A DNA stretch of 64,000 nucleotides, from positions 124,001-188,000 of IMG/VR virus record IMGVR_UViG_3300036944_001289. One strand, written 5' to 3'. The position numbers and the translations under genes were made by a program. This document shows, one piece after another, positions 28,164 to 59,341 of this stretch (the first letter of the stretch is position 1; every line of letters starts with the position of its first letter). Under the pieces are notes generated by a model. It saw only the letters and a program-made list of their open reading frames with translations. It was not told the DNA's origin and did no database searches.

Positions 28164-28391
28164 CTACTTTTTCTTCTTCTTTCTAGGTAATCTGAATGTT
28201 ACTGTAGATATAGATGGATTTAGTCTATCACCTTTAAATCCACTGTACGCAGAGGGTGTAGACTTATTACCAATAAGAGGGTTCACAGTACCATGATTAG
28301 GCATATTAGGAACCTTTACAGGTCTTTTTGTATCTATAGGTGCTCTAAAACCACCCTCCAATAGAAATTTAACTAATTTATTGAACCCCAT
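28164..28391 (-). CDS. small basic late protein
   Basis: TAAATA 5 nt upstream; MGFNKLVKFLLE leader; RKKKKK tail. Confidence 0.55.
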   Translation of the reverse strand: MGFNKLVKFLLEGGFRAPIDTKRPVKVPNMPNHGTVNPLIGNKSTPSAYSGFKGDRLNPSISTVTFRLPRKKKKK

Positions 28392-41340: not shown

Positions 41341-41420
41341 CGATAATTATTTATTCCTTTTTTCTTCGACCCCAGGGTTTTTTACCAGGTAACTCAGGAA
41401 AAAATAGCCTAATTCTTCTC

Positions 41421-42275
41421 TTAGTACTTACCTAATTCTTTTAGGTAAGGAGAAATTTGTTGCACGCCTTCTGTGATCACTTCTTCTGTCTGTTCTGTAA
41501 CAACATGATCAACATCTTGGCGCTCATTTAGTGCTTCTTCTTTCAAGACTTCGAGTCTATCTGTTAATTTCTTATTGAAGAGTTTGACTGTGTAATCAAA
41601 ATTTTCATTTATAAATTCCAGCGATTTGCCAGCCATTACTTTCTTAACGTAATATTTTTCTTGATCGTTAAGTTTGGCGGTTTTTTGTTCTAGAATCAAA
41701 CCAGCTTGTATTTGCTGTAGGGATTCTTTTAACATAGCGTTTTCGCTTTGGATAGACTCAAGCTTTTTAGAAGCTTCATTTATTTGGTTTTTACCATCAA
41801 GCACTGCATCTTTGATAGAATCTCTTTCAAGTGCAGATGTGACAGCTAAAGTGTTTCGTAGTGATTCAAGTAGTTTGGCTGCTTTCTTGTTTTTAACAGC
41901 TTCTTGAATGTCAGCAGCAGGTACTATCTCTTCAAGATAAGCTTCGAGATAGTCACTGATAGATTCAACTAAGGTTTGTTTAAACTTCTTAGCATCTTCA
42001 TTTAGTGTTCTCTCATACTTAGAAACAACCTTCTTAAGTTTGTTTGCTCTATCTAGTTCAATAGCTTCTACTACCTTTTCTAATTTAATTGTATGATCTT
42101 TATCAATAGCTTCGAGTAGTTGCTCGAGCTTCTTAGTATAAAGTTCATCTTGTTCAGCAAGAGCTTTCTCAACATGGAGTTCAACTTTTGCTTTTACCTT
42201 TGATTCAATAGCCTCTTGAATCATTTTTAAAGATTCAGGTGAGAGGTCTTTTAATTGTTCGTTAATATTCTCCAT
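41421..42275 (-). CDS. prohead core scaffold gp22
   Basis: Acidic coiled coil between gp21 and gp23, multiple (L/I)xE sites. Confidence 0.85.
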   Translation of the reverse strand: MENINEQLKDLSPESLKMIQEAIESKVKAKVELHVEKALAEQDELYTKKLEQLLEAIDKDHTIKLEKVVEAIELDRANKLKKVVSKYERTLNEDAKKFKQTLVESISDYLEAYLEEIVPAADIQEAVKNKKAAKLLESLRNTLAVTSALERDSIKDAVLDGKNQINEASKKLESIQSENAMLKESLQQIQAGLILEQKTAKLNDQEKYYVKKVMAGKSLEFINENFDYTVKLFNKKLTDRLEVLKEEALNERQDVDHVVTEQTEEVITEGVQQISPYLKELGKY

Positions 42276-42474: not shown

Positions 42475-43137
42475 TTATAATTTATTTATAAAACTAAGAA
42501 TCGCGCTACGTAGATATTGATCTTTATCGGAGCGAGGTAAAGTTATTAACTTCTTTTCAAAAGTATCATATAATTCTTCATAATGTCCATTCTCTCTCAA
42601 TACATATTGTTTAGATTCGAGAATACCATTAACAAACGCTTTACCGAAACTTGGATCTGCAACGCAATCGATTGCTACTAGTCTAAAATCTTTTACTCTA
42701 TTACAACCGTTTGATTCAGGTATTAATTGCCCTAAAGCTCTAGAACTCATACCAACTTTAACACCGTCGTTAATAAGTGAGCGAACTATAAGACCTGTAG
42801 GTGTTGATAGTACTTTACTTTTACCGTAAAATACATTACCATCTCTTTTTAGTTCTGTAACTAAGTGACAGACTCTAGATAGATCTACGTCAGCTGTGGT
42901 AGGGTGATTAAGTTCACCCATTGCTCTACCAGGCTTAATCATATCATCTTCGTAGCGCTGAACTTCACGGACCATTTCATCGATAGGATATAGACGCTTA
43001 TTTCTATTGACACCCTCTGCCATCATATATGGCCCCTTTATATAGAGTGTTCTAGGTTCATTAGCATTACGCTCTTCAACGATATAAGAAAAATCGTTGT
43101 TATTAGTAGGTGTCTCAACTATTAGTCTAAAACTCAT
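42475..43137 (-). CDS. prohead protease gp21
   Basis: NRNKRLYP, GELNHP, GMSSRALG, DCVADPS. Confidence 0.95.
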   Translation of the reverse strand: MSFRLIVETPTNNNDFSYIVEERNANEPRTLYIKGPYMMAEGVNRNKRLYPIDEMVREVQRYEDDMIKPGRAMGELNHPTTADVDLSRVCHLVTELKRDGNVFYGKSKVLSTPTGLIVRSLINDGVKVGMSSRALGQLIPESNGCNRVKDFRLVAIDCVADPSFGKAFVNGILESKQYVLRENGHYEELYDTFEKKLITLPRSDKDQYLRSAILSFINKL

Positions 43138-43171
43138 TTAATATTATTTATATGATGGTGTATCATATCCA

Positions 43172-43621
43172 TTAAGTTTTTATATTTAATTCTTTTTCTG
43201 TTAGTATAATAAACTCCATATTCTTTCTTTTAGCCCATTCTTTAGCTGCTATCCATTTTGCTTGATTGGTAATCCAGGTAGTTTGTTCGTATAGTATTGT
43301 TTTTTTATGTTTACCTTTTGTAGGTACTGGTTGTACCGTTTGTTTGCTAGGCTTAATTTCTATCAAAAGTTTTTGTTTATTACCGTCTTTATCTTTAAAG
43401 ACAACAAAATTATCTACAAAATATCTGTGAACTTTCTGATCTAAAGGGTTGATATATGGTACAATTATATTTTCACTACCCCATGCTAATATATTAGGAT
43501 TTGTATCAGCCCATCTAAAGAATTTTAACTCCCAACCACTACGATATACAGGATTGTTCTTTCCTAGATATTTTTCTATATTAATCGGTCGGTAAATTCC
43601 TTGCTTATATTTATTGGCCAT
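43172..43621 (-). CDS. head completion nuclease gp4
   Basis: YRSGWE, WGSE, HRYFVD, IEIKP, KW.AAKEW. Confidence 0.95.
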   Translation of the reverse strand: MANKYKQGIYRPINIEKYLGKNNPVYRSGWELKFFRWADTNPNILAWGSENIIVPYINPLDQKVHRYFVDNFVVFKDKDGNKQKLLIEIKPSKQTVQPVPTKGKHKKTILYEQTTWITNQAKWIAAKEWAKRKNMEFIILTEKELNIKT

Positions 43622-43650: not shown

Positions 43651-44496
43651 TCATTTTACAAACACACCACTATACATCATTGCATTACCCCATTTACTCG
43701 GATATAAAGACACATGTACATGTTTGAGACCATGGCTAATCAAATTAGCAGTAGTGTAGTTAGCATTTTTAACTTGTAGTAGGTTGTTCTTAATATTTTT
43801 ACCTATGTTTATGTTAAACTCATCTATATATGCGTCTTCCGGTAACTCATAGAAATTAGCATCATCTGGTTCAGTAGTGTTTATTGTATCACTCTCATCA
43901 TACTTAGACCTATTAATTCTGGTATCTATATAAGACTTAGATCTAATTAGATTAGTGAATGTAACATGAATAAATCCATTAGGTGTAAGATTATTGAATA
44001 CATGTGCTATCGCATCTATAGCCTCTGGTATTGCTGTAGTAGTAGTATCATAATCGACTATATCGAATAATATTGGTTTGTCTACAATATTATTATCAAC
44101 AACATTGATGAATTTTTGCGGTTGTTGTAATACATTTTCAAACTTAACAATTTTTCTTTTTGTAAAAGGCACATACACACTTAATTTATTATTAGATGCA
44201 TCTCTAATAAATCTTCGACCTTGTTCAAAAGCTTTAGTAGGGGTATAATCGACACCATATATCTCTATGGTTGGATTAGGTAGATTTGATATTATTTTAC
44301 GTTCAAAATCATAGGTATCTGGGAGAGATGCTATTCTAACCACTGGCTGTGCATTTAATTTATCAAACACCCCAAGTCTAGATAATATAGATATATAATT
44401 TTCTCTATCTTTAAGTTTGTTCTCGATAGAGAACCCAGTATGATACTCCTCTCTACGTTTACGTTCAATTAAAAAATAGTCCTTAAATGTTATCAT
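43651..44496 (-). CDS. SAM-methyltransferase-like protein with capsid-targeting leader
   Basis: MITFKDYFLIE; RIASLP, EIYGVD, FDIVDYD, LTPNGFIHVTF in Rossmann MTase strand order. Confidence 0.45.
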   Translation of the reverse strand: MITFKDYFLIERKRREEYHTGFSIENKLKDRENYISILSRLGVFDKLNAQPVVRIASLPDTYDFERKIISNLPNPTIEIYGVDYTPTKAFEQGRRFIRDASNNKLSVYVPFTKRKIVKFENVLQQPQKFINVVDNNIVDKPILFDIVDYDTTTTAIPEAIDAIAHVFNNLTPNGFIHVTFTNLIRSKSYIDTRINRSKYDESDTINTTEPDDANFYELPEDAYIDEFNINIGKNIKNNLLQVKNANYTTANLISHGLKHVHVSLYPSKWGNAMMYSGVFVK

Positions 44497-45705: not shown

Positions 45706-47475
45706 TTATTGTGGTGCGGGTGTTTCAGCTGGTGCTGCTTCTGCACCACCAGTTTCAACTGGAGCTTCTCCACCTACTTCAGCGGGACCTCCACCAAACT
45801 CCGGTGGTGAACCTGCTGGTGATTGTTGCTCACCCGCACCACCTATTTCACTACCTGCTGCTGCTTGATTTTGTTGACTCATTGTCTGTAGTTGATCTCT
45901 CCAATTTGGACCAGCATTTGTAATATTATTAAGCTCCCACTCAAGCTCTTTATCCTTACGGAGGAATTCACGATTTGCCTTAATGTCAATATCACTCCAA
46001 CCAAGAATTTTCTTTTGTAAATATGTAGGAGAGATAGTAGGATTGCTCGCAAGGGTATTAAAGTTATTTGTTTTAAGTTCTAATTTTTGGCTCTCTCTTA
46101 ACTCATAAAAGTTAGTAGGTACATTAAATTCTAATGATATATGCTGTTCTTTAATGTCGTATTTTTCTACTAGACCTTTAAGATTTAAGTGTGTTAAAAA
46201 TCCATTTTTTAATGCACCTGCAAATTGTTGTTGTAAGCGAATAATAAACTTAGCAAACTTGAGCTCTTCTCTTAAAATTTCTGCACCATCTTTGAAAGTA
46301 CTCTCAGAGTTAAGTCTATTAGTAGGTACTTTTAATGATTTGTAAAGTTTGTTTACAAAGTACATTAAGTCTGTTAGCTCACCAAGATTTGCACCACCAG
46401 CTAATTGTGTAACAGATGTGCCTTCGCTACCTTGTCTTTTTGCAAACCAAAAAGAGTCCAACATTGATTGTGGATTAAATTTCTGAACTATACCAGATTG
46501 ATTGACGTCGAAAGTCTTCTTGCTCCAGTACTCTTGAATTAATTTACGTAAATAAGCTTCAGCTTTTGGTGGTGGCATGTTACCAACATCAACATTAAAT
46601 ACTAGACGTTCAGGAGCTCTTACCAATCTATATATTACTATAGAGTCTTCTATAAGAGATAACTGTCTGTAAGCTCTTCTTGAATTTTCAATAAACGGTA
46701 ATCTAAAAGATTTATCTTGATTCCATATGCCAGAATTAATATATGTAACCTGGTTTTTATCCATAGGGATAAACTCATACTTAATTACTTTATTAGGCTT
46801 AGCAGGATCAAAAATAGGCTTTCTTAGAATATAACCTTTAATAATCATATTCTGAATATTATCAAAAATAGGATCGATTAACTCCGTAGGCAACTGTACC
46901 ACGCCAAGTATACCTTCTTCTGGAAACTTTTTATGAACTACATGTTCAAAGTAAACTTCACCCTCCACTATTAACTGTCTAAAATATTCCCAGCCTTTTC
47001 TTTCAAGATTAAAATATTCTACGTATTTTTGAAACTCTTTAATTATCTGTTCCTTATCTATATCTTTTAAGTCAATATTTTTAAATTGTAACTTAACAAT
47101 ATCACCTGCTTGATCTTTATTGATTGTTTCATCACAAATCTCATCTAAACAATCAGATATTTCAGAGAATGCCGCCATCACTCTGTAATCCATTATTCTC
47201 GCACCCTTATCAGCCTGTATATTGGCATATACCATATCATTGTATATGCCACCTTTTGCTATAGAACCAGATGGTGTGTTATTATAATCATTATCAAAAA
47301 ATACGCTATTACGAGCTAAAGCTTCGGAACGTTTAGACCCTGTGTCCTGGAATATTTGATACTTAGGATTTATCTGATTTAAGTATCCATTTAGATCAAG
47401 AGTTTGGTATGGTAACTTATTTACAAGGTTTTTAAAGAAACCACCGGATACTGTATTTTTATCGTCTGCAGCCAT
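45706..47475 (-). CDS. portal protein gp20
   Basis: RQLSLIEDSIVIYRLVRAPERLVFNVDVGNMPPPKAEAY, GEILREELKFAKFI.RLQ. Confidence 0.97.
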   Translation of the reverse strand: MAADDKNTVSGGFFKNLVNKLPYQTLDLNGYLNQINPKYQIFQDTGSKRSEALARNSVFFDNDYNNTPSGSIAKGGIYNDMVYANIQADKGARIMDYRVMAAFSEISDCLDEICDETINKDQAGDIVKLQFKNIDLKDIDKEQIIKEFQKYVEYFNLERKGWEYFRQLIVEGEVYFEHVVHKKFPEEGILGVVQLPTELIDPIFDNIQNMIIKGYILRKPIFDPAKPNKVIKYEFIPMDKNQVTYINSGIWNQDKSFRLPFIENSRRAYRQLSLIEDSIVIYRLVRAPERLVFNVDVGNMPPPKAEAYLRKLIQEYWSKKTFDVNQSGIVQKFNPQSMLDSFWFAKRQGSEGTSVTQLAGGANLGELTDLMYFVNKLYKSLKVPTNRLNSESTFKDGAEILREELKFAKFIIRLQQQFAGALKNGFLTHLNLKGLVEKYDIKEQHISLEFNVPTNFYELRESQKLELKTNNFNTLASNPTISPTYLQKKILGWSDIDIKANREFLRKDKELEWELNNITNAGPNWRDQLQTMSQQNQAAAGSEIGGAGEQQSPAGSPPEFGGGPAEVGGEAPVETGGAEAAPAETPAPQ

Positions 47476-47539: not shown

Positions 47540-49792
47540 TTAAGTATATAAACCACCCGTTGCTGCTACACCAAGAGCATTACCAAGTAAATAATTACTG
47601 GCACCACCATTTGTATAAATTAATGAATTATTCCATACATTATAATATTTACCTGAATAAACAGCGACACCAGAAAAGGTAGGTCTAGTTCCAAATGTTG
47701 GTGTAAGGTTAATTGTAGCAAGGTTACGTGCAACAGCAAAAGCATCTGTTAATGTCAAATTACCAGCACCATAAGCCAAATTAGACCCTGGATTAACACG
47801 TATATATCCATTGTTTTCAGCTAACATATGTGCATAAATTTGCGAACCACTTACGACACTTATATTCCAACTAGCATTTACCCATATTTCACCACCTTCT
47901 GTAGCATACAGATGAATTAACGCAGAATTACTACCTATAAACGTTATACCTGTACCTATTAACAATCTTGCTGTAGATCTTGCACAAGATGCAAATGTAA
48001 CTAATAAGTTTGATATACTTACCTGACCTCTACCTATACGAAATGGATTAGTATTATTTCCTAGTGTAACTGTACCGACACCAATACCACTTAGTGTCGT
48101 TAAATTAACATTCGTTGGTCCAAGAAGAAGATTACTAGATATTTCATATGTACCTGGTTTTAATAATATTGTTGGTGATACTGATGTTTGTATAGCTAAA
48201 CCACCAATGTAGTCAAATGCTTTTTGAACAGTTAAAAAAGGATTATCATCAGTACCGGTACCTGATAAATTACTACCTGTAGTTGAAACGTATAGTGTAA
48301 AATTAGTATCTATAGCGTTAGCTGTATTGACAGTTACATCTATATTTTGAGAACCAGCATCGGTAGCAGATATAGTTGTACCAACAAAATTAATACCAGT
48401 AACACCTACAACAACGGTAGTACCTTCATCCTTTATTGTTAACGATGATACAGCAAGGTTAGGATTAAAACTACTTAGAGTATTTAATACTATTTTCTCT
48501 GCAGATGTTATTAAACCTTTTGTTGAGGTAGTAGCTAGATCAAGCATCGAAGTTACTTGTGTAGGTGTTAAATCCTCAACATTACCGGTACCTGCTGTTA
48601 TTCTACCTTTAATGACATTAGTTGATACTTGCGATAATTTAGTATTACCAATTACACCGCTATCAACAGTCCAAGATGTACCGCTACCTGATACAGTTAT
48701 ATCACCTTTATCACCGTCAGTAAGACTGCCTGAAACACTTACTGTAATATTACCTGGTGAAGATAATGATGATTGAACACTTGCACCAATAAAATTAATA
48801 GATGATACAGATGTGGATATAGTAATACCTTCATCTTTTACGGTTAAAGATGGTGAGATGATATTGGGGTTGAAACTACTTAGAGTATTTAATACTATTT
48901 TCTCTGCAGATGTTATTAAACCTTTTGAAGACGTAGTAGCTAGATCAAGCATTAAAGTTGCTTGTGTAGTCGTTAAGTCTTCTAGATTACCTGTACCTGC
49001 TGTTGTTCTACCTTTAAAAACACCTGAAGATACTTGTGATAATTTAGCGTTACTAACTACATTAGAATCAATTGTCCAAGATGTACCTGAGCCAGATACA
49101 GTTATATCACCTTTATCGCCATCGGTAATTGCTCCAGAAACACTTACTATAATATTACTCGGTGATGATAATGATGATTGAACGCTTGCACCAATAAAGT
49201 TAATCGATGTTACAGAAGTTGATACAGTAGTACCTTCATCCTTTATTGTTAACGATGATACAGCAAGGTTAGGATTGAAACTACTTAGAGTATTTAATAC
49301 TATTTTCTCTGCAGATGTTATTAAACCTTTTGTGGAGGTAGTGGCTAAATCAAGCATTGAAGTTATCTGTGCTGTAGTTAGGTCTTGTACATCGCCCATA
49401 CCAGTTGATATTCTACCTTTAATAGTATTAGCAGATATAGTAGCTAATTTTGTATTTGTTACTGCATTAGAATCAATAGTCCAGGTAGCTCCTGAACTAG
49501 ACACGGTTATATCGCCTTTATCACCATCTGTAATTGATCCAGAAACACTTACAGTTATATTACCAGGAGAAGAGATAGATGCTTGTACTGTAGCTCCGAC
49601 AAAATTAATTGATGATACAGTAGTTGAAACTGTTGTACCTTCGTCTTTTATAGTTAAAACTTGTGGTATAGAAGACTTTATATCTGAAAATGTAATTTTA
49701 TTAACAACACCATCTGTGGTAGATATAGGAATAATATCACTATCACTTGGAGTTGTAATAGAAGATAAATCAATAAACTGTTTGTATTTCAT
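47540..49792 (-). CDS. long tail-fibre-like protein with three 135-aa repeats
   Basis: Repeated TIKDEG...ITDGDKGDITVS...LDLATT..KGL; C-terminal YVSTTG...PF.TVQKA beta-helix-type domain. Confidence 0.75.
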   Translation of the reverse strand: MKYKQFIDLSSITTPSDSDIIPISTTDGVVNKITFSDIKSSIPQVLTIKDEGTTVSTTVSSINFVGATVQASISSPGNITVSVSGSITDGDKGDITVSSSGATWTIDSNAVTNTKLATISANTIKGRISTGMGDVQDLTTAQITSMLDLATTSTKGLITSAEKIVLNTLSSFNPNLAVSSLTIKDEGTTVSTSVTSINFIGASVQSSLSSPSNIIVSVSGAITDGDKGDITVSGSGTSWTIDSNVVSNAKLSQVSSGVFKGRTTAGTGNLEDLTTTQATLMLDLATTSSKGLITSAEKIVLNTLSSFNPNIISPSLTVKDEGITISTSVSSINFIGASVQSSLSSPGNITVSVSGSLTDGDKGDITVSGSGTSWTVDSGVIGNTKLSQVSTNVIKGRITAGTGNVEDLTPTQVTSMLDLATTSTKGLITSAEKIVLNTLSSFNPNLAVSSLTIKDEGTTVVVGVTGINFVGTTISATDAGSQNIDVTVNTANAIDTNFTLYVSTTGSNLSGTGTDDNPFLTVQKAFDYIGGLAIQTSVSPTILLKPGTYEISSNLLLGPTNVNLTTLSGIGVGTVTLGNNTNPFRIGRGQVSISNLLVTFASCARSTARLLIGTGITFIGSNSALIHLYATEGGEIWVNASWNISVVSGSQIYAHMLAENNGYIRVNPGSNLAYGAGNLTLTDAFAVARNLATINLTPTFGTRPTFSGVAVYSGKYYNVWNNSLIYTNGGASNYLLGNALGVAATGGLYT
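48468..49332 (-). repeat. 405-bp period tandem repeat inside the fibre gene
   Basis: Identical ~55-bp block at 48468, 48873 and 49278. Confidence 0.9.
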
Positions 49793-49801
49793 TGTTATTA
49801 T

Positions 49802-50335
49802 TTATATAAGATAAATAGCGCTTGTGCTATCTACAAAAACATTATTATCGTTATCTACACATATGCTTAATAAAGACTCTGGCGTTAGGAATAACGATCT
49901 ACCATCTGGTCTTCTATATGTAAAAGATGATACGGGTCTAATATAGGTTATTATTAATGGTGTTGTTACAGATATTACAGTACTATTTGAAGATAAATAT
50001 GGTGAAAATAACGTTTTAGAGCTCTCTGAGTACCCAGCAACATTATATGGTATGAATTGTATATCACAATCACCTATTAATCTAGGTACATTTATTAAAA
50101 TATTATTTTTGTCTATAACAGTATAATCAACTAAAGAACCTGTAATAGGCTGCTGTCTTTTGAATATGTTTATACTAGTTAGTGATGGTAAAGAAAATGT
50201 ATCGTTACTCGATAACATAACATTTAAAAGCTTATCAAAATTATATCCCTGTAAACCTACAACACTTAAATTATTTGTGTTTGTGGTTAACGTATCGTAT
50301 AATTTTATACCATCGACTGTAATGCTGGTTATCAT
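49802..50335 (-). CDS. structural protein downstream of gp15
   Basis: Start re-called at ATG 50335 (ATGA overlap with gp15 stop); Ig-like T/S/N-rich sequence. Confidence 0.55.
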   Translation of the reverse strand: MITSITVDGIKLYDTLTTNTNNLSVVGLQGYNFDKLLNVMLSSNDTFSLPSLTSINIFKRQQPITGSLVDYTVIDKNNILINVPRLIGDCDIQFIPYNVAGYSESSKTLFSPYLSSNSTVISVTTPLIITYIRPVSSFTYRRPDGRSLFLTPESLLSICVDNDNNVFVDSTSAIYLI

Positions 50336-51090
50336 GGATTTGCTGATACTCCTACAAATTCCGTTTCTGTTAAAATACCTGTAGATACAGGCCATGTATA
50401 GGTATTACCTGAGAGACTATCATAGGTTGTTATCCTACTCTCAACATTAAAATTATTATTAATATAATATATTAATCCTTTTGGATTTTGCTGAGTCTTA
50501 AACAACCAACCTTTTATCGTAAAAGACGTGTCAGCTGTACATCTATATTTATCGGTACTTGAGATATCTGTAGGGTATGATAATGCAATACCACCTTCCC
50601 AGAGAACTTCGCTTCTTATTTCTTGATTTAATGATAGACCTAAATCCTCTGGTACCTTCCAACCTATTATAATGTATGGATTAGCATAAGGTACAAAGTT
50701 ACTTAGTATTTGATCCATGTCTGTCTGATATTTTGTTATTATCGACATACTTACACTTATATTAATAGGTACAGGTGATAAAAGATGAGATACACTATTT
50801 TGAGTACCATCGTTTTTACCATAATAGAAACCATCAAGTTTATTGAAAACTCTATTAACATCCCTAGATATATTTGTTATAGATACAGATACTACTGGTA
50901 GTGTTAAGTTTTTAGCTTGGTTTATTATATCATATAATACACGCTGTTTAGGTGCATATACATATCTTACTTCAATTGACTGTTCTGTTTTTCTTTCTCT
51001 ATTATATCGCTGAATTACAGTATCGTCAAACGCAGCAATAAACTGCGTTATAAGATCTTTTACTTCGAAAAAATACGTTTTTGATTTAAT
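50332..51090 (-). CDS. tail terminator/sheath stabiliser gp15 with probable AUU start
   Basis: Frame stays open 114 codons upstream of the track start: IKSKTYFFEVKDLITQFIAAFDD...VRYVYAPKQR...TLPVVSV; no NTG before the upstream TAA. Confidence 0.8.
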   Translation of the reverse strand: MKSKTYFFEVKDLITQFIAAFDDTVIQRYNRERKTEQSIEVRYVYAPKQRVLYDIINQAKNLTLPVVSVSITNISRDVNRVFNKLDGFYYGKNDGTQNSVSHLLSPVPINISVSMSIITKYQTDMDQILSNFVPYANPYIIIGWKVPEDLGLSLNQEIRSEVLWEGGIALSYPTDISSTDKYRCTADTSFTIKGWLFKTQQNPKGLIYYINNNFNVESRITTYDSLSGNTYTWPVSTGILTETEFVGVSANP

Positions 51091-51113: not shown

Positions 51114-51506
51114 TTAGTTATAATGCTTTAATAGAGTCGCAAGCATTTCCAGTTTTGTTGTAATCTGACTATATTTTTTAAGCTTCTTCATTTCGGATAC
51201 AGAATCAACAGTTTTATCTATCAAATTTTTTAGTTGATTTTTAGTCATCTTACCGTATCCTTTTACCATAATTTCTTCACTTTCACTAAACGAACCTGAT
51301 GCTCCTGGAATACCTGCAGTGTTTGTTTTAGCTGAATTACCTGGTAAGTTACTAGTACTGTTAGCATTAGCGTAGCTGTTCTTTACGTCAGATGTTGGCA
51401 TATTATTATGTGCTTGATTTTTTTGCTGTGTATCAGCAATAGCCCACATATTGAGACCGCTTTCATACAACATACCTATCTGCTTTATGTCATTAAGTTT
51501 ATCCAT
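51114..51506 (-). CDS. late hypothetical protein
   Basis: TAAATA 5 nt upstream; MLYE leader. Confidence 0.6.
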   Translation of the reverse strand: MDKLNDIKQIGMLYESGLNMWAIADTQQKNQAHNNMPTSDVKNSYANANSTSNLPGNSAKTNTAGIPGASGSFSESEEIMVKGYGKMTKNQLKNLIDKTVDSVSEMKKLKKYSQITTKLEMLATLLKHYN

Positions 51507-51519
51507 AATTATATTTACA

Positions 51520-51557
51520 TAAAAAAAGCTGGGTTGTTAACAACCCAGCTTTTTTTA
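51520..51557. terminator. perfect 38-bp palindrome, terminator
   Basis: TAAAAAAAGCTGGGTTGTT/AACAACCCAGCTTTTTTTA. Confidence 0.8.
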
Positions 51558-51570
51558 AAATTTTTATATA

Positions 51571-51972
51571 TTATCCGTTAAGATTCCAACGACGTCTATT
51601 ATCTGGACCAATATTATCAAACCCACCAGCACTAACTCTTGCTATTATAGTTGAGCTAGAAGTTAGTACTGTAAATGAGGTTGTAAAGTTATTTGACGCT
51701 TGAAGGCAGAGTGTTACACCTGTAGCAGATCCGGATAGTAGTCTTACTATTGTAGATGTATCTCCAGGGCTTGAAATTGTTACTACTTGTGTGGTAGACA
51801 GCGATGCTGTAAATTCTGTAGAATTGTACAATACACCCTCTACATCTACACCATTAAATGTACCAGCACTAGAAAGTACTATTGCATTGTTAACACCACT
51901 CAGAGAGTAGATTAAAGGTGCTGGGTTACCCATTTTTGTTACATCGTATACTGCGTCTGTAAAGCTTGCCAT
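51571..51972 (-). CDS. S/T-rich structural protein
   Basis: 133 aa, beta-rich, TAAATA upstream. Confidence 0.55.
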   Translation of the reverse strand: MASFTDAVYDVTKMGNPAPLIYSLSGVNNAIVLSSAGTFNGVDVEGVLYNSTEFTASLSTTQVVTISSPGDTSTIVRLLSGSATGVTLCLQASNNFTTSFTVLTSSSTIIARVSAGGFDNIGPDNRRRWNLNG

Positions 51973-52028
51973 ATGTATTATTATTTATTGTTTTTGATCA
52001 GAATTTATTGAATTTAATAAATAATTAT

Positions 52029-52679
52029 ATGAGCTTTCACGAAGAATTAAATAATCTTTACGCAAAACAAATAGCAGGTAAATCTATACTTGTAAATGAA
52101 AATAGTCAAAAGACAGTAAATGAAGCATTCCCACCCTATGAAGCAGGTGAATATGCCCCCGAACATCCTACTGCTCGTGAAAAAATGTTAGCTTTAGCAA
52201 AGAGTACACATGAAGAAACACCAGAAGGTGAAAGACCACGTGTTGCATATCAAGGTGCAGAACCTGGTACACATACATGGCGCTTCTATTTAGCGTTTAT
52301 AACAAAATTTAGAGAAATGTCACCAGAAACATCTGTTAAAGTTGCTAATTTAATTTTAACACAAATACTTGATAAACTATCTGAAAGCCCAGATGGTAGA
52401 TTTATGGGTACAAATCTTCAATTTAGAGAGCAAGTAGTTAAGCCTATTGTTGCAAGAGCAATACCTGAAATGACAAAAGGTGATGTAAAGATAGGTAAAA
52501 CATATGTTGAGTATATTGCAAGAGGTATAACCGATGCTGCAGTACAATCAGGTATATTAAGAAACTTCTCTGATGACGAGTTTCCACGCAACAAACCAAA
52601 GGATAAACCAATTACAGATCCTGCAGGTCTAGGTAAGTACTCAGCACAAAATCTAGATAAATTACTCGGACTAGATTAA
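52029..52679 (+). CDS. late hypothetical protein
   Basis: Start re-called at 52029 (TAAATA 5 nt upstream). Confidence 0.6.
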   Translation: MSFHEELNNLYAKQIAGKSILVNENSQKTVNEAFPPYEAGEYAPEHPTAREKMLALAKSTHEETPEGERPRVAYQGAEPGTHTWRFYLAFITKFREMSPETSVKVANLILTQILDKLSESPDGRFMGTNLQFREQVVKPIVARAIPEMTKGDVKIGKTYVEYIARGITDAAVQSGILRNFSDDEFPRNKPKDKPITDPAGLGKYSAQNLDKLLGLD

Positions 52680-53374
52680 TGTACGTTACACCTACAAGCG
52701 AGCTTGCTACTGCTGTACGTGAAAACTTACGTAGAGCAGTATTAAATAAAGAATCCTGCTGGGTGTTTGATAAAATCGAACCTTCAGGTAAGTACTTTAC
52801 ATCTTTTAAGATAGTCGATGAGAATAACATAATTATGTACGCTTACAGAAATGGTAACGTATATAAGCTAAATAATCTTAACGGACCTGCATTCTATCAC
52901 GTAAGAGGTAATAAAAAAATGTTCTTTATTGATAATGAAGCTTATTCTGAGTTTGATTATAGTAGACACTACGCTATTAAATTTATCAAAAATTTACAGC
53001 TTAGAGATCCTAATCAACCTATAGTTGGACCTGGACGCTACAGATTAGTAAATAATGGTATACTTGAGATAAAAATAAATTACAGCGGTGATATGTCATT
53101 AAAAACATATAATTCAAGAGGTAATCTACATAATGAAAACGGACCTGCAGTTATTGATTTTGCTTTCTATCATATGATAGAATATTATAGAAACGGTGAA
53201 TTACATAATTCAACAGGACCTGCAGTCCTCAAATTGAGTAAAGATTCTAATGTAGATACACAAGAGCTATTTTTTATAGGCGGTAAAGCGCTGACACAAA
53301 ATGAATTCAAGTCATTTGCTAAAGGTTATGATTCTACTGACATTGACTTATACTCGGATTTAACAGGACTTTAA
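52679..53374 (+). CDS. LHxxxGPA-repeat protein with shared C-terminal tag
   Basis: LNNLNGPA, LHNENGPA, LHNSTGPA; tail IGGKALTQNEFKSFAKGYDSTDIDLYSDLTGL. Confidence 0.75.
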   Translation: MYVTPTSELATAVRENLRRAVLNKESCWVFDKIEPSGKYFTSFKIVDENNIIMYAYRNGNVYKLNNLNGPAFYHVRGNKKMFFIDNEAYSEFDYSRHYAIKFIKNLQLRDPNQPIVGPGRYRLVNNGILEIKINYSGDMSLKTYNSRGNLHNENGPAVIDFAFYHMIEYYRNGELHNSTGPAVLKLSKDSNVDTQELFFIGGKALTQNEFKSFAKGYDSTDIDLYSDLTGL

Positions 53375-53375
53375 T

Positions 53376-55007
53376 ATGAGTAATATTTTAGAAGACTATC
53401 ACATATACACAAGATATACTAATAACCTCATTCTTGAGTTTAATGAAGCTACGCTTAAAAAATTGAGCGTAACATACAAGAAAGAGAGACCAGAACTAAC
53501 TGATGATGCTATAACAGCATACTTAGAGGCATATGAACAACTAAAAAACACTCCTAGGTTTATTGGTGTAGTTAATAGATTTTATCCTAAAATTAAAAAC
53601 CCTAAGGATATATATTCATTCACTTGGGAGCAACTTGAACAGGTAATAGATAGTTTAAAAGATATTCAGATAAGTACCGATACTAAAGTCGATAGTACTA
53701 AGTATAAAGAAATTTACGAAGACGATACAATAAAGATAATTCTAGGTAGAGATGCAGAAGAGTGGATATATATTCGTAATACATTATTACCAGCGTTACC
53801 ACCATTTAAGGGTTCTTCATGGTGTATAGGCAACCCCGGTGGTAGTAATATGTATTACTCTTATAGAATTAAAAAGTTAAATCAATATTCACCAGAACAA
53901 TTCTGGTCACAATATCTTATTCATAGCAAAGTACCTACACCTTCTCCTAAGTATCAAAATGCAGTATTGATGATATCACAAGATGGTGAGTATTATTTAA
54001 CTTCTCAAGATAACAGGGATGATACACGCATGGAATGGAGCAGGGTAATACATCTTATACCTGCATTAAAAAATAAAGAGAAGTATATAAAATTTATACC
54101 ATTATCGAAAAAAGAACAAGAAGAATATGCTGTCACAAAAGCTACACCGGAAAGTTTTGACAAACTAAGATATAGAGCAAAACAGGTATATTGTCAAGTA
54201 GGTAAGCCATTATTTATAAAAGATTTTATAAACATGGATAAAGATCTACAAACCATGTACATAAATGGTAGATTTGATAGAGGTGGTTTTTCTCTGTACA
54301 ATAAAAGTACATACGATTCATATAGTAAAAATCTATTTGCAATTCCTGGACCCAAAGAGATAGATTTACCTCAAGGTAATATTCAATCACCTGAGTTTGT
54401 AGAGCGACTTAACAGCCTACTTGGAGATATTTCTATAGAAGATAAGTTTAGTATCTATAAACAACTCTTGTTTTATATATCACCTGAGCTTAAAAACTTT
54501 CCTCAAGCAATACAAACATTCTGCAGACAATGTGAGAAGTATTTACCTGCATTAAAAAATACACTACTTTCAAAACTTATATCAGAGTATAATATTAAAA
54601 ATTTCAAAACATTACCAGATATGATAAAGTATACACTTTGCGAACTGCCTCAAATTTTCATAACAAGTTCTGATTTTATAAACCTACCTGAAAAATCACA
54701 AAATAACTATATTAATAGTAGAAAAACGTTAAGACATTTAGTGTATTTATTTTTTACACCTAAGATGATAAAAAAGATAGAATCTCTAAAACCATCTGAA
54801 ATTAATGAACAAGCAATTACAAATATATGGAAAAATAACTCTGTAACATATAGACAAGTTATTGATATGGCTACAAGAGAAGGACAAAAACAAAAAGGTA
54901 AAGGGATTACATATTTGTTAAACTTCAATAATTTGAGCGGTGATATACCTGTACGAAAATTATACGCTTCAAAAGTCTTAGAAAAGATTAAAGAAGAAAA
55001 CGAATAA
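53376..55007 (+). CDS. large hypothetical protein with SWC...YYSY motif (PcfJ-like)
   Basis: 543 aa; GSSWCIG...MYYSYR. Confidence 0.6.
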   Translation: MSNILEDYHIYTRYTNNLILEFNEATLKKLSVTYKKERPELTDDAITAYLEAYEQLKNTPRFIGVVNRFYPKIKNPKDIYSFTWEQLEQVIDSLKDIQISTDTKVDSTKYKEIYEDDTIKIILGRDAEEWIYIRNTLLPALPPFKGSSWCIGNPGGSNMYYSYRIKKLNQYSPEQFWSQYLIHSKVPTPSPKYQNAVLMISQDGEYYLTSQDNRDDTRMEWSRVIHLIPALKNKEKYIKFIPLSKKEQEEYAVTKATPESFDKLRYRAKQVYCQVGKPLFIKDFINMDKDLQTMYINGRFDRGGFSLYNKSTYDSYSKNLFAIPGPKEIDLPQGNIQSPEFVERLNSLLGDISIEDKFSIYKQLLFYISPELKNFPQAIQTFCRQCEKYLPALKNTLLSKLISEYNIKNFKTLPDMIKYTLCELPQIFITSSDFINLPEKSQNNYINSRKTLRHLVYLFFTPKMIKKIESLKPSEINEQAITNIWKNNSVTYRQVIDMATREGQKQKGKGITYLLNFNNLSGDIPVRKLYASKVLEKIKEENE

Positions 55008-55020
55008 CATAAATATTAAC

Positions 55021-55269
55021 ATGGCAAAATTTGACGACTTAATAAAGCACATACTTAGTGAATCACCAGCACCTGCTATTACACCAGAAAAACCTACAGT
55101 AAAACCTGGCACAAAACCAGAAACACCAAGTAAACCATCTAAACCAGAACATCCTTTTGCACCTAAACCAGGTATAAAACCACGCCCTGATGCAAAGAAG
55201 AAATCACGTGAAGAGAATGAAGAAAATGCTGATGTTAAGTTATTTTTATCACACCGTCGTAAAAAATGA
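55021..55269 (+). CDS. Pro/Lys-rich late protein
   Basis: TAAATA 5 nt upstream; MAKFDDLIKHILSE; KP repeats. Confidence 0.65.
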   Translation: MAKFDDLIKHILSESPAPAITPEKPTVKPGTKPETPSKPSKPEHPFAPKPGIKPRPDAKKKSREENEENADVKLFLSHRRKK

Positions 55270-56423
55270 AATTTAATAAAAAAATATTCGAAGCTATAGA
55301 TAAAGGTGATGCACCTAATCTCTTTCACAGTGATAAAGAGAAAAAATATAAACCATCTTTAGATGTAGAGAAGTTAATGCCTTCTCTATCTCAAAAAGAA
55401 TCAAATTACATAGAAACAGTTACAAGTGCATCATATAAAAAGGCAATTGAAAGATTAAGAAATTATACCGGGTTAAATCCGGCTAGGACAGGTCTACCGC
55501 AACTACTAACAGTTGCAATGAGTGCTATACCTAAGATACAGCAGGTACAACACGCACACAAACAACATCTTGAAAAATTAGCAGTAGATACAGTTTTAAG
55601 TCTTCCAGAATTTGAGTTTTTTAAGCACATGATTGATCGTGGTCAGCTTAAAATAGTTGCTAAATTAGAGCAAGCAGATTTAAGTAATGCTATTACAAAA
55701 GAGGATCTTGAAAATAAAGAAGAAGAACCTGAAGAGGGCGAACTAACTAATGCTGAAGAAATTACATTAAACCTGGCCGTAGATCTCGGAGATGCAAGCG
55801 ATGATAAGTTAAAATGGAAGTTTGCAAATATGTTAAAACAAGGAAATGCATTTAATAAGACATACTTGTTTAATATGGTTTCTGATGAACTAAATAAAAT
55901 AGATCCAAACTTAGTAAAATTATATGGCACATTATCATCAGTAATACAAGTTGCATACTATGCAATGCCTGATATACCTCTTAATATGCGTTCATCAGAA
56001 TCTGAAATGGGTTCATCTGAAGTTGTTCCAGAAGACGATATTTATACTGTATATGCTTTATCACCTTTCTTTCCGGTATTGATACATGAGATTGTAAAGG
56101 GGTTGTGGACATATCTAACCATGTCACTTGTAGGTCAAGGAGAACATGATGAAAGAACAATAGACGATGAAACTGTTGAGTTAATGACTGGACCTGAATT
56201 ATACGCAAAATTCGTTGAGTTTATACCTTTCAAAGATTCAAAATATCTACCTCAGACAGTAATGCAATTAATAAAGACAAATAAGATTGCTGATGTTCTA
56301 GGTGGTGGTGATAAAGCTAAATCAGCTGTATATACAGCTTTAGATCAGGTAAAACAAATAATGGCAGAGTACGAAGATCAAATGGACGACTTTAACGGTG
56401 ATAAATATAAGGATATAGAATAA
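55266..56423 (+). CDS. helical late protein
   Basis: 385 aa; MKFNKKIFE leader; LEKLAVD, F.NML.QG, LIHEIVKG. Confidence 0.7.
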   Translation: MKFNKKIFEAIDKGDAPNLFHSDKEKKYKPSLDVEKLMPSLSQKESNYIETVTSASYKKAIERLRNYTGLNPARTGLPQLLTVAMSAIPKIQQVQHAHKQHLEKLAVDTVLSLPEFEFFKHMIDRGQLKIVAKLEQADLSNAITKEDLENKEEEPEEGELTNAEEITLNLAVDLGDASDDKLKWKFANMLKQGNAFNKTYLFNMVSDELNKIDPNLVKLYGTLSSVIQVAYYAMPDIPLNMRSSESEMGSSEVVPEDDIYTVYALSPFFPVLIHEIVKGLWTYLTMSLVGQGEHDERTIDDETVELMTGPELYAKFVEFIPFKDSKYLPQTVMQLIKTNKIADVLGGGDKAKSAVYTALDQVKQIMAEYEDQMDDFNGDKYKDIE

Positions 56424-56807
56424 ATGGAAAATATTTTTCTTACACAATATATAAATGAAGCTTTTGATACAAAATCTTTAGCAGCTCATAGAAAAAGTCT
56501 AATATCTAAATACGGTAAAAAGGGTACGACAAGTGTAAAAGACGTAATAATAACTCCAGAGAAATTACAAATGCTCAAGACTATCAGAAATGATATGGGA
56601 TTATTTAATGAAGGTGAGCCTGCACCAGCTTGGAATAGTTTTACAGCAGCGCTACTAAACAATATAAAAACCAATCCAGTTTTTGTTAAGAAGATGCTAT
56701 CTAACGAGCAAACAGCTAAAAAATTTATAGCGTCCTTTATATTAAAGTTTAGACGCGAAATTGAAAGTACTTCCAGCTACCTTAGCGAAAAATTAAAGAC
56801 TGGTTAA
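56424..56807 (+). CDS. late hypothetical protein
   Basis: MENIFLTQYINE leader. Confidence 0.6.
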   Translation: MENIFLTQYINEAFDTKSLAAHRKSLISKYGKKGTTSVKDVIITPEKLQMLKTIRNDMGLFNEGEPAPAWNSFTAALLNNIKTNPVFVKKMLSNEQTAKKFIASFILKFRREIESTSSYLSEKLKTG

Positions 56808-57611
56808 GTCGTTATACATTTGTATATCTTCTGTACTATACTGCTTAGTTAGTTGCTTAAACTCACCAGGTAATATTTGTTTACCATCAATGTAATACTC
56901 CATAATATCAGGTAGAACTGAGCCTGATGGACTAGTCATACCATAAAAATTAATTATAATGGCAGGGCCTGTTAGACGGTGAAGCTGACCGTGTTTTAAC
57001 CACTTTGTTTCCTTAGTTTTACTAAAAGAAGAAGGCTGTAAGATATAAGCAGGTTTATCATCTTCTCTGTGTAATCTATTTTGAGGATCACGATACTGTA
57101 TAAGTTCTCTATTGCTGGCTGTTATAGAAGTTTGTTTCTTGTATTGTAACTTACCTTCAATATAAAAATCTTCATCTTTAAACTTACCGCTTCCTTGTGA
57201 AATATATACATTTGCAGGTCCACCTATACGGTGATACTTGCCATTTTTGTACCATTCTTGTGATTCTATCTTACCATTTTTTATAGTAGTTTTAGCAGGG
57301 CCATTCTCCCTGTTCAACTTACCGTGTGTATACCAAGCTTCAATATGATGTATATTGGGATACTCTTGTATAATCTCATTAAGATTTAACTCTAGAGACC
57401 ATTCATTATCAGTTAAAATCATAGCAGGTCCATCATCTCTATGTAATCTACCTTGTTTATCTCTCCATGATTTTCTGGTATATACTTCGTCGAATGCTGA
57501 ACTATCTCTTTTAGATACGTGTGTTCGAGTAGTTTTCTCTACATCAGTAGGTGGTATAAGATACTTACTCTTAAGGCCTTCCTGTAAATAAAATTTTTTA
57601 AACGATAACAT
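56793..57611 (-). CDS. LHRxDGPA-repeat protein with shared C-terminal tag
   Basis: Five degenerate repeats; MLSFKKFYLQE leader. Confidence 0.8.
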   Translation of the reverse strand: MLSFKKFYLQEGLKSKYLIPPTDVEKTTRTHVSKRDSSAFDEVYTRKSWRDKQGRLHRDDGPAMILTDNEWSLELNLNEIIQEYPNIHHIEAWYTHGKLNRENGPAKTTIKNGKIESQEWYKNGKYHRIGGPANVYISQGSGKFKDEDFYIEGKLQYKKQTSITASNRELIQYRDPQNRLHREDDKPAYILQPSSFSKTKETKWLKHGQLHRLTGPAIIINFYGMTSPSGSVLPDIMEYYIDGKQILPGEFKQLTKQYSTEDIQMYNDLTSL

Positions 57612-57988
57612 TACGAATTAAGGTCGTTTAGTATATCAAGATCTTCATCAGTGTAATCTTTAGCTGCTTGAGATACTTCATTAGGTAAGACTTCTTTACC
57701 TTTAATATAGTATTTCTTCTCGATGAGAGAACCGTCTTGATCATACTCTTCTAAAGCAGGACCTTTTATATTGTGTAATTGACCATCTCTATAATGAGAT
57801 ATAAGTTTAGGCTTACCATCTTTATAGAATAGCTCTACAGCAGGACCACTCTCATTATGCAGTACTTTAGTACTTGGCTTAAAAACGACATTAACACCTA
57901 CTACACCATTACCCCAATTTAAAGTGTAAGCATTACTACCAGTCTCAGACATTTCATTTAAGATTTCTAGAAGAGCGTTGAAATTCAT
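57611..57988 (-). CDS. LHRxDGPA-repeat protein with shared C-terminal tag
   Basis: Two repeats; MNFNALLEILNE leader. Confidence 0.8.
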   Translation of the reverse strand: MNFNALLEILNEMSETGSNAYTLNWGNGVVGVNVVFKPSTKVLHNESGPAVELFYKDGKPKLISHYRDGQLHNIKGPALEEYDQDGSLIEKKYYIKGKEVLPNEVSQAAKDYTDEDLDILNDLNS

Positions 57989-58005
57989 ATGTTAATATTT
58001 ATTAT

Positions 58006-58554
58006 TTATGAATTTAAGTCATCTAAGATATCTAAGTCTTCTTTATCATATTGCTTAGTTAGCTGTTTAAATTCATTTGGTGTTAGTTCTTTACCATCTA
58101 TATAGTACTCTTCTTCTATTTTATCACCATTTTGATTCCACACTTGACTAGCAGGACCATCTAAGCGATGAAGCTTGCTATCTTTATACCATTCTTCACT
58201 TCGCCTTTTACCATTTTTATGCCATGATTGATAAGCAGGTCTATCTAACCTATAACGTTTATTATCTCTAAACCATTCTTCAATATGTTTTTGACCATCT
58301 ATATACCACAGTTGAACAGCAGGACCATCTAAGCGATGAAGCTTGCTATTCTTAAACCACTCTTCAAATTCTTTTTGACCATTTTTATACCACCATTGAC
58401 GAGCAGGACCATCTAATCTATGAAATTCACCATCTTTAAGCCATTCTTCAGACTTAAGCTTTGTATCATCCTCATCCCAATACGTATGTATAACTTTAAT
58501 ATCTTGGTAATCTTCAATATTCTCTACTAATAAAATCAATTGATCAAACTTCAT
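58006..58554 (-). CDS. LHRLDGPA-repeat protein (4 x 28 aa) with shared C-terminal tag
   Basis: 84-bp repeat units; MKFDQLILLVE leader. Confidence 0.85.
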   Translation of the reverse strand: MKFDQLILLVENIEDYQDIKVIHTYWDEDDTKLKSEEWLKDGEFHRLDGPARQWWYKNGQKEFEEWFKNSKLHRLDGPAVQLWYIDGQKHIEEWFRDNKRYRLDRPAYQSWHKNGKRRSEEWYKDSKLHRLDGPASQVWNQNGDKIEEEYYIDGKELTPNEFKQLTKQYDKEDLDILDDLNS

Positions 58555-58562
58555 AAGATTAT

Positions 58563-59186
58563 TTATGAATTTAAGTTATCTAATATATCCATATCTTCTT
58601 TATCGTATTGCTTAGTTAGTTGTTTAAGCTCATTTGGTGGTATTTCTTTACCGTTTATATAGTACTCTTCAATCATCTTTTGACCATCTTCATCCCACTC
58701 TTGACTAGCAGGACCATCTAAGCGATGAAGCTTGCTATCTTTATACCATTCTTCAAATTCTTTTTGACCATTTTTATACCAATCTTGACGAGCAGGTCCA
58801 TCTAAGCGATGAGGTCTACCATCTATATAGTACTCTTCAATCATCTTTTGACCATTTGTATACCAGTATTGACGAGCAGGTCCATCTAATCTATGAAATT
58901 CATCATCTCTAAACCATTCTTCAATATATTTTTGACCATCTATATACCACAGTTGAACAGCAGGACCATCTAAGCGATGAAGCTTGTTATCTTTATACCA
59001 TTCTTCAAATTCTTTTTGACCATTTTTATACCACCCTTGACGAGCAGGACAATCTAATCTATGAGGTTTACCATCTTTATACCAATACTCCTCCTTAGGT
59101 TTTGTCTCAGCATCATCCCAGTACACTCTTTCAACTCGAATATTTTCATTATCTTCTGCTAATAAAACTAAATCTTTAAACTTCAT
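58563..59186 (-). CDS. LHRLDGPA-repeat protein (5 x 28 aa) with shared C-terminal tag
   Basis: 84-bp repeat units; MKFKDLVLLAE leader. Confidence 0.85.
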   Translation of the reverse strand: MKFKDLVLLAEDNENIRVERVYWDDAETKPKEEYWYKDGKPHRLDCPARQGWYKNGQKEFEEWYKDNKLHRLDGPAVQLWYIDGQKYIEEWFRDDEFHRLDGPARQYWYTNGQKMIEEYYIDGRPHRLDGPARQDWYKNGQKEFEEWYKDSKLHRLDGPASQEWDEDGQKMIEEYYINGKEIPPNELKQLTKQYDKEDMDILDNLNS

Positions 59187-59341
59187 AAGATTATTTATAA
59201 GAAAACCTCTCTTTATATTTTTACGCCGCCCAAAAATTCCCGAAAGGCGTAATACTATCTATATTACCGAAAGTTCCGGGCCCTATATAGCGTTTCTATT
59301 TTTCTGCGCGCGTCGCGAGAATTTCCGAGGGTTCCGAGCTT

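Follow-up and report, generated by a model that had tools for sequence, protein, structure and literature searches.

MORN-variant repeat proteins with T4-like leaders and a conserved C-terminal tail in a myophage known from metagenomes

Within a stretch of 64,000 nucleotides (hereafter the window) of the 209-kb virus record IMGVR_UViG_3300036944_001289, which comes from shale-gas metagenomes, five genes between positions 52,679 and 59,186 are paralogs of a tandemly expanding MORN-variant (YwqK-like) family of beta-hairpin repeat proteins. Their architecture, with an N-terminal leader in four of the five, a repeat sheet and a conserved C-terminal tail, is supported by the analyses presented here. 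Our preferred reading, to which we give a probability of roughly 45%, is that they are internal head proteins, processed during head maturation, in which a variable binding sheet is joined to a constant docking tail. Judging from the sequences, this would be a new variant combining two known kinds of protein, the head cargo that bears a capsid-targeting sequence (CTS) and the MORN-variant binders. The whole block is syntenic in a sister strain (strain B; contigs L003, L009 and L014-L016), which has eight family members against five in the window, and four short MKF paralogs against two.

Repeat bodies and leaders of the five proteins

The members and their leaders are listed below, lengths being in amino acids (aa) and tail scores in bits of the matrix described in the next section.

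52679-53374, plus strand: 231-aa member; tail at 53276-53371 (36.7 bits); ortholog in strain B at L003 7369-8061
56793-57611, minus strand: 272-aa member; five repeats; pI 9.0; tail at 56796-56891 (39.8 bits)
57579-57611, minus strand: leader of the 272-aa member, MLSFKKFYLQE
57611-57988, minus strand: 125-aa member; two repeats; tail at 57614-57706 (41.2 bits)
57953-57988, minus strand: leader of the 125-aa member, MNFNALLEILNE
58006-58554, minus strand: 182-aa member; four repeats; pI 5.1; tail at 58009-58101 (45.0 bits)
58522-58554, minus strand: leader of the 182-aa member, MKFDQLILLVE
58563-59186, minus strand: 207-aa member; five repeats; pI 4.9; tail at 58566-58658 (41.0 bits)
59154-59186, minus strand: leader of the 207-aa member, MKFKDLVLLAE

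The five open reading frames (ORFs) of the LHRxDGPA type are where the original prediction had placed them, one on the plus and four on the minus strand, and the tails that it quoted are exact. Its repeat number of 2-5 is also correct, since a six-frame scan of the window found the H/N-R-x-D/G-G-P-A core two to five times per ORF and nowhere outside the five. The isoelectric points are 4.8, 4.9 and 5.1 in three members and 7.8 and 9.0 in the other two. The 231-aa member has no CTS-like leader and resembles two MORN-variant modules, with a cap-like FFIDNEAYSEFDY in its interior. At 57611 the stop codon of the 125-aa gene overlaps the start of the 272-aa gene (TAATG), which suggests that the two are translationally coupled, and the 272-aa gene overlaps by 15 nt, at the 3' ends, with a convergent 127-aa ORF (56424-56807).

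The bodies, which had been likened to MORN-variant scaffolds, are indeed single-layer beta-sheets of this type, built of tandem hairpin units of ~23-28 aa with a signature of the G-x-x-H-R-x-D-G-P-A type. AlphaFold2 (AF2) models of the 182-aa and 125-aa members have predicted local distance difference test (pLDDT) values of 91.5 and 82.2, respectively, and in both a leader helix is followed by successive beta-hairpins and then by two helices at the C terminus. Foldseek gave 161 viral matches at E<=1e-3 (best E 7e-11), most of them annotated as MORN repeat, MORN variant or YwqK antitoxin and belonging to giant viruses and uncultured tailed phages; among PDB structures the best matches, at E ~3e-3, were OspA (a single-layer sheet) and the MORN domains of SET7/9 and junctophilin-2. 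The Pfam family MORN_2 (PF07661) stays below its gathering cut-off (best 19.5 vs 29.6 bits). A word-indexed search retrieved more than 3000 relatives, several of which are named 'YwqK antitoxin component' by JGI and several of which carry PF07661 or PF20530; no solved structure was found among the sequence relatives. YwqK is an immunity protein that binds and neutralises the deaminase toxin YwqJ (bioRxiv 10.64898/2026.09.29.755374), so that inhibition by binding is a documented role of this fold. No toxin gene could be recognised beside the family, whose neighbours have no match in Pfam, NCBIfam or PHROG, and PADLOC gave a single weak, sub-threshold match, on the 207-aa member (E 0.0034). Both the length and the sequence of the sheet differ between paralogs and between strains.

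The leaders of the four other members are amphipathic, 11-12 aa long and of the form M-x-F-...-L-x-E. The original prediction had called them capsid-targeting, and they do have the form of the T4 CTS and end in the motif L/I-x-E of the gp21 protease; the resemblance is one of form only. Among the leader-bearing members examined (four in the window, seven in strain B, and P0002, P0003, P0004, P0005, P0011 and P0122) the leader ends in [LF]-x-E at residue 9-12 in 17 out of 17, while P0039, a tail-bearing homolog, starts where the leaders of the others end and lacks exactly this segment. Most homologs begin directly with the repeat, indicating that the N-terminal helix is not required by the fold. 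In T4 the ten residues of the CTS (MKTYQEFIAE) are enough to bring a protein into the prohead core, and the gp21 cleavage site is after L/I-x-E (PMC8442874, PMC9026906). The cluster of repeat genes lies a few kb from the head module, and a gp21-type protease gene is found 9 kb away from it. By analogy, T4-type head targeting would be the most likely meaning of the leader. The recognisable genes of the head module are the following.

39886-41340, minus strand: gp23-type major capsid protein (PF07068, E 7e-90)
41421-42275, minus strand: gp22-type scaffold (PF25623, E 3.2e-6)
42475-43137, minus strand: gp21-type prohead serine protease, N terminus MSFRLIVE (PF03420 Peptidase_S77, E 7.8e-30)
45706-47475, minus strand: gp20-type portal (PF07230, E 1.2e-99)

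The eighth member of strain B (P0121, 321 aa, leader MKTFKLFFE, same tail) is located directly after the portal gene, and its start codon overlaps the stop codon of that gene by one base. In the T4 map this slot belongs to genes 67 and 68, for the prohead core. The leader-bearing gene of the head module is not the same in the two strains: in strain B it is P0121 (L009 9131-10096) and in the window an unrelated 281-aa ORF (43651-44496, minus strand; MITFKDYFLIE) that follows a 382-aa gene.

Leaders on proteins of this kind were also seen in other contigs. In L017, an unrelated T4-like contig, a MORN-variant protein starting MYIKLFEQFIAE lies four genes from the portal and protease, and a 102-aa ORF of the head module starts MKHVMLFEQFI, the leader LFEQFI being common to both proteins. 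Contig L005 (3798-6600), which represents yet another phage lineage, carries four tandem MORN-variant paralogs with the common leader MKFxDLVNLLLEAKRDKEP and a tail of their own, F-N-A-I-F-G-V-S-K-D-x-A-x-I-K-Q-R-A-A-S-N-D-L-F, which in one paralog is internal and followed by a further domain. Among cultured phages with virion proteomes, only short fragments of such a protein were found, in Atu_ph07 and Celeribacter phage P12053L, and the literature yielded no link between MORN-variant proteins and phage virions.

Composition and conservation of the tail

The shared C terminus comprises 31-32 aa, and the last 32 alignment columns are invariant at I, G, K, E, K, Y, D and L. A matrix of 15 columns, made from 12 tails of this phage and the sister strain, gave 36.7-45.0 bits for the five ORFs and 7.1 for the next ORF in the window, so that the conserved tails are confirmed and go far beyond chance. 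Two details of the original description have to be amended. The spacing, given there with x4 before the final leucine, is actually K-x-Y-x3-D-h-x5-L (h, hydrophobic), and the sixth, weaker tail attributed to the ORF at 52029 (K-Y-S-A-Q-N-L-D-K-L-L-G-L) was rejected, as its score of -5.4 bits places it 4th among 84 C termini from outside the family, though it is kept in the ortholog.

The tail is composed of two halves. A generic cap, W/Y-[YF]-x-N-G-K-x-L-[ST]-x-E-E-F, is present near the C terminus in 60 of the 120 best homologs and is usually followed by 11-40 residues that vary by lineage, so that the first 13 tail residues (I-x-G-K-x-L-x-x-x-E-F) represent the family-wide cap. The suspicion that the whole tail might be nothing but this generic element is therefore justified for the first 13 residues and not for the last ~18 (K-x-Y-x3-D-h-D-h-h-x-D-L-N-S), which are lineage-specific. 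When 1.84 billion representative proteins were searched with a profile of 18 tails, only 6 clusters were retrieved, in all of which the tail is at the C-terminal end of MORN-variant proteins, and every complete protein among them has a leader; no tail was found in this collection on any other body. Apart from one spurious bacterial match, pattern scans of IMG/VR and the JGI metagenomes recovered no more than this phage and one sister strain. The idea of a portable tag had to be abandoned, given that in these collections the tail occurs solely on MORN-variant proteins of this phage lineage.

The presence of the tail is due to shared descent and its persistence to selection. In comparisons of divergent paralogs, the tail is 32-58% identical at third codon positions and 39-65% at the amino-acid level; synonymous positions are thus nearly saturated, which rules out gene conversion as the cause of tail identity and indicates that the tail is conserved at the protein level by selection and not by recent copying. 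Between paralog classes the cap is 56% identical and the specific half 46%, compared with 31% in the last repeat and 18% in the body, so that the tail is indeed conserved more than the bodies, as had been noted, and is under purifying selection. The most conserved positions of the specific half are K16, Y18, D22, D28 and L29, with D24 mostly Asp, and they include the surface acids D22, D24 and D28.

In both AF2 models the sheet is mostly above a pLDDT of 90 and the cap helix at ~78-92, while the terminal helix (helix 2; E-D-L-D-I-L-D-D-L-N-S), which is acidic, amphipathic and lineage-specific, falls to 47-66 and is not predicted to pack on the body in either of them. The low values persist when the alignment is restricted to tail-bearing sequences. 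A conserved sequence with surface acids and low predicted order suggests a peptide that folds on a partner rather than a packing element, and the conserved surface acids together with the pLDDT of 47-66 argue against a purely structural cap.

Proposed head proteins with a possible docking helix, and alternatives

In the reading that we prefer, the leader would direct the protein to the prohead and its scaffolding core (gp23/gp22 shell plus core), as the T4 CTS does, and a gp21-type protease would remove it after L-x-E. The mature proteins would remain inside the head until they pass into the cell together with the DNA. The repeat sheet is likely to be a variable target-binding surface, comparable to that of YwqK for its toxin or of T4 IPI* for a restriction enzyme, and helix 2 may serve for docking, as a short motif that becomes folded upon binding one partner shared by all paralogs. 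This partner would most likely be basic, and also phage-encoded because the tail motif is confined to this lineage.

Among the closest parallels are the T4 internal proteins IPI, IPII, IPIII and Alt, which are alike in having a short leader ending in L/I-x-E (~10 aa in T4, 11-12 aa here), a gp21-type prohead protease in the same genome and a strain-variable gene set in which the leader is kept. Injected T4 IPI* blocks the host defence GmrSD (PMC3012670, PMC9026906, PMC8442874). The T4 proteins are small and basic and have no conserved C-terminal tail, whereas here the bodies are MORN-variant sheets, three of the five members are acidic, one is leaderless, and the family is known from genes alone. 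Giant phages of the phiKZ and SPN3US types have paralogous head-internal proteins whose propeptides are cut after Glu by a gp21-related protease (PMC9026906, PMC5694885); these ejection and inner-body proteins have unrelated folds and were seen in the head by mass spectrometry, in contrast to a family read from genes. With the YwqK-like proteins (PF07661) the family shares the repeat signature, the single-layer hairpin sheet and the cap W/Y-x-x-G-K-x-L-[ST]-x-E-E-F, and differs from them in the sub-cut-off Pfam score, the added leader, the lineage-specific acidic helix and the missing toxin gene next to it. An analogy, and only that, can be drawn with the cargo-loading peptides of encapsulins, short conserved C-terminal peptides on diverse cargo of an HK97-fold shell; they have no sequence similarity to the tail, and the cargo bodies here all belong to one family.

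Several observations weigh against processed head proteins of this sort. The likeness of the leaders to the CTS is one of form (length, amphipathicity, L-x-E) and not demonstrable homology, and [LIVFMY]-x-E is found within the first 18 residues in 35% of the other ORFs. This motif is enriched in the 51-59 kb block with the family included (p=0.002), but not significantly without it (p=0.07), and leaders on the neighbouring ORFs were accordingly rejected; nor does a gapless matrix from the family leaders select these neighbours. The 231-aa member is leaderless, and P0087, a leader-bearing relative, has no more than a 6-residue extension after the cap, so that the long tail is not needed for the function of the leader. 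Three acidic members out of five are at odds with the small, highly basic T4 internal proteins, and the low pLDDT of helix 2 may come in part from a shallow alignment. Finally, the motif ATAAATA, which precedes three of the family genes (see below), also stands before some non-structural genes, and late expression is therefore not proven.

A rather unlikely alternative is that these are ordinary cytoplasmic accessory proteins whose helices cap the sheet edges and whose tail is kept for folding, with neither packaging nor a shared partner. The superfamily is huge (the >3000 matches and 161 viral fold matches above) and mostly without a capsid link, and giant viruses, like many uncultured phages, have expanded MORN-variant families too. 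The same cap, with 11-40 variable residues after it, is seen in half of the homologs, the tail never leaves the MORN body, and the proteins are acidic, unlike the T4 internal ones. It is harder to reconcile such a role with an N-terminal helix that most homologs, starting at the repeat, show to be unnecessary for the fold, with a leader boundary that coincides with L-x-E in 17/17 and with the start of P0039, with a strain B member situated between portal and neck genes, or with conserved tail surface acids on a last helix that is not predicted to pack on the body. We think it decidedly less probable that the tail itself is a signal for capsid loading or retention, docking on the scaffold core or the inner HK97-fold shell together with the leader or in its place. 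No L/I-x-E occurs in or before the tail, which would thus remain on the mature protein, P0087 has a leader and no long tail, and in one L005 paralog the equivalent tail is internal; on the other hand, the leaderless 231-aa member keeps the tail, a lineage-specific tail fits a partner from the same phage, conservation reaches the C-terminal end at a fixed distance, and such segments can matter, as T4 Alt and gp21 are processed at C-terminal ones (PMC9026906).

Homo- or hetero-oligomerisation through the tail, in which mixed dimers would combine two binding sheets, appears very unlikely. With its net charge of about -5, the helix would be expected to be self-repelling. The amphipathic pattern L-x-I-L-x-x-L is nevertheless common to all paralogs, and a low pLDDT for the single chain would fit a helix that folds on assembly. 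Eukaryotic MORN proteins reportedly dimerise through their C-terminal ends. Equally doubtful in our opinion is a miniature of the arginine-finger pocket of GpsB, with Y18, D24 and D28 (plus E10) clamping an arginine at the helix start of a partner peptide of the S-R-x-x-R-(R/K) type. The tail profile searched against all PDB sequences placed GpsB N-terminal domains on top (E 0.0028, 29 columns without gaps), and hhalign with an alignment of 60 GpsB sequences, taken from 80 gpsB loci, gave a probability of 88%, P 3e-6 and a score of 31.5, while 300 column shuffles reached at most 19.7. In this register the most conserved tail residues fall on those of the arginine pocket, E10, Y18, D24 and D28 corresponding to Glu17, Tyr25, Asp31 and Asp35 of BsGpsB; these four form the PBP1 arginine-finger pocket, and mutation of each cuts the affinity for the PBP1 peptide more than 8-fold (PMC6335420). 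However, DivIVA proper scores 12.5, within the range of the shuffles, despite the same register, hmmscan of ten 40-aa tails at E<=10 gave no PF05103 match, and more than half of the GpsB signal comes from the generic cap G-K-E-L-x-x-x-E-F, for which an unrelated helix, from S100, is a match as well. The first half also disagrees in predicted secondary structure: in AF2 tail positions 1-7 belong to the last hairpin, and a helix stands in the place of the Gly-rich loop of GpsB. The tail is moreover C-terminal and not N-terminal as in GpsB/DivIVA, it ends 2-3 residues past L29 with no coiled-coil continuation, and the motif S-R-x-x-R-[RK] is absent from all ORFs of the window. The GpsB likeness, seen at the sequence level, is a lead only.

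A bolder version of the preferred reading is an injected library of repeat binders, with varied sheets docked by one acidic helix, maybe through a GpsB-like arginine clamp, on a common partner that could be an effector, the scaffold or a host hub, and reshuffled among sister strains by tandem duplication; we regard it as improbable. It would amount to a modular capsid-delivered adaptor system much like the one that had been proposed, whose packaging, common effector and counter-defence role are inferences; no such system has been described for any phage. The T4 internal proteins are the classic case of injected proteins that enter along with the DNA and disarm host defences, and almost nothing is known of T4-type head cargo outside the T-even phages. 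Should the preferred reading of processed head proteins be true, a very common viral repeat family that looks functionless would gain a role, as pre-made binders delivered at infection, and the principle of the capsid-targeting leader would extend to a lineage whose capsid protein is at most 34% identical to those of cultured phages. The constant tail would then be a handle for finding the shared partner, and leader and tail could serve as natural modules for protein packaging in engineered phages.

Neighbouring genes, expression signals and genome context

The block in and around the family contains the following ORFs.

51114-56807: ORFs of 130, 133, 216, 543, 82, 385 and 127 aa, syntenic in strain B

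Five of these seven have [LIVFMY]-x-E in the first 18 residues, and three are small and basic (pI 9.2-9.8). The function of the neighbours, including the ORFs at 53376 and 55266, did not emerge in any usable way from searches of Pfam, PHROGs, NCBIfam, PADLOC and the ESM Atlas. The 82-aa ORF (55021-55269, plus strand) is Pro/Lys-rich, has a pI of 9.8 and a leader MAKFDDLIKHILSE, and is kept in strain B; a 116-aa ORF antisense to it (54978-55328) is probably spurious. The leader matrix picked a single non-family ORF, at 10.6 bits against a control maximum of 6.0: a basic ORF of 75 aa (28164-28391, minus strand) that starts MGFNKLVKFLLE, ends in a run of Lys and has ATAAATA at -12. Its sequence makes it a candidate for a small basic internal protein like the T4 IPs.

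The motif ATAAATA was located at these positions.

59192-59198, minus strand: 5 nt upstream of the 207-aa gene
58560-58566, minus strand: upstream of the 182-aa gene and across the stop codon of the 207-aa gene
57996-58002 and 58003-58009, minus strand: before the 125-aa gene
41348-41354, 43145-43151 and 49799-49805, minus strand, and 52017-52023, plus strand: further examples

Three of the four minus-strand family genes thus have the motif at -12 to -14, as do capsid, protease and tail genes. The unit of duplication includes ATAAATAATCTT-ATG, the stop codon of the upstream tail falling inside the motif of the next gene. Over the window, ATAAATA occurs at most 30 nt upstream of 22 of the 89 ORFs (~1 expected), in 12 cases exactly at -12 from the ATG and in most of the 22 at this position or near it, and it is commoner in the structural region at 38-62 kb (14/29 ORFs) than elsewhere (8/60; p=6e-4). 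Shine-Dalgarno-like sequences precede only 8 of the 89. The motif could be a T4-type late promoter giving nearly leaderless transcripts or an A/T-rich translation signal; in the block, a scan for sigma-70 promoters and terminators gave nothing above shuffled sequences.

The phage is a very divergent T4-like myophage known from metagenomes only. Megablast of the window against 50,697 phage records gave no match, and the closest cultured relatives of the gp23-type capsid protein, those of cyanomyophages, are at most 34% identical to it. A baseplate spike, a ribonucleotide reductase and a helicase are also encoded in the window. The assembler depth of this phage was ~250 in one shale-gas run; a look for RNA or proteome data found none, and no RNA run was listed. 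Short-read assemblies of the source runs contain pieces of 60-320 bp at 58172-59006, inside the 182-aa and 207-aa genes, where breaks are expected because of the near-identical repeats; apart from such breaks, no structural variants were seen in the DNA contigs of these runs.

Some features of the head region are of separate interest. The G+C content is 42.5% at 40001-42000, in the region of the capsid gene, against ~32% elsewhere in the window. An ORF with a TnsA-like endonuclease domain (43172-43621, minus strand; PF08722, E 4e-20) lies among the head genes and is kept in strain B, and a similar one is found in the head module of L017. Beside the portal, 47540-50395 (minus strand) holds a 750-aa ORF with a weak match to a tail-protein PHROG and a 197-aa ORF; in strain B the place of both is occupied by a 156-aa ORF only.

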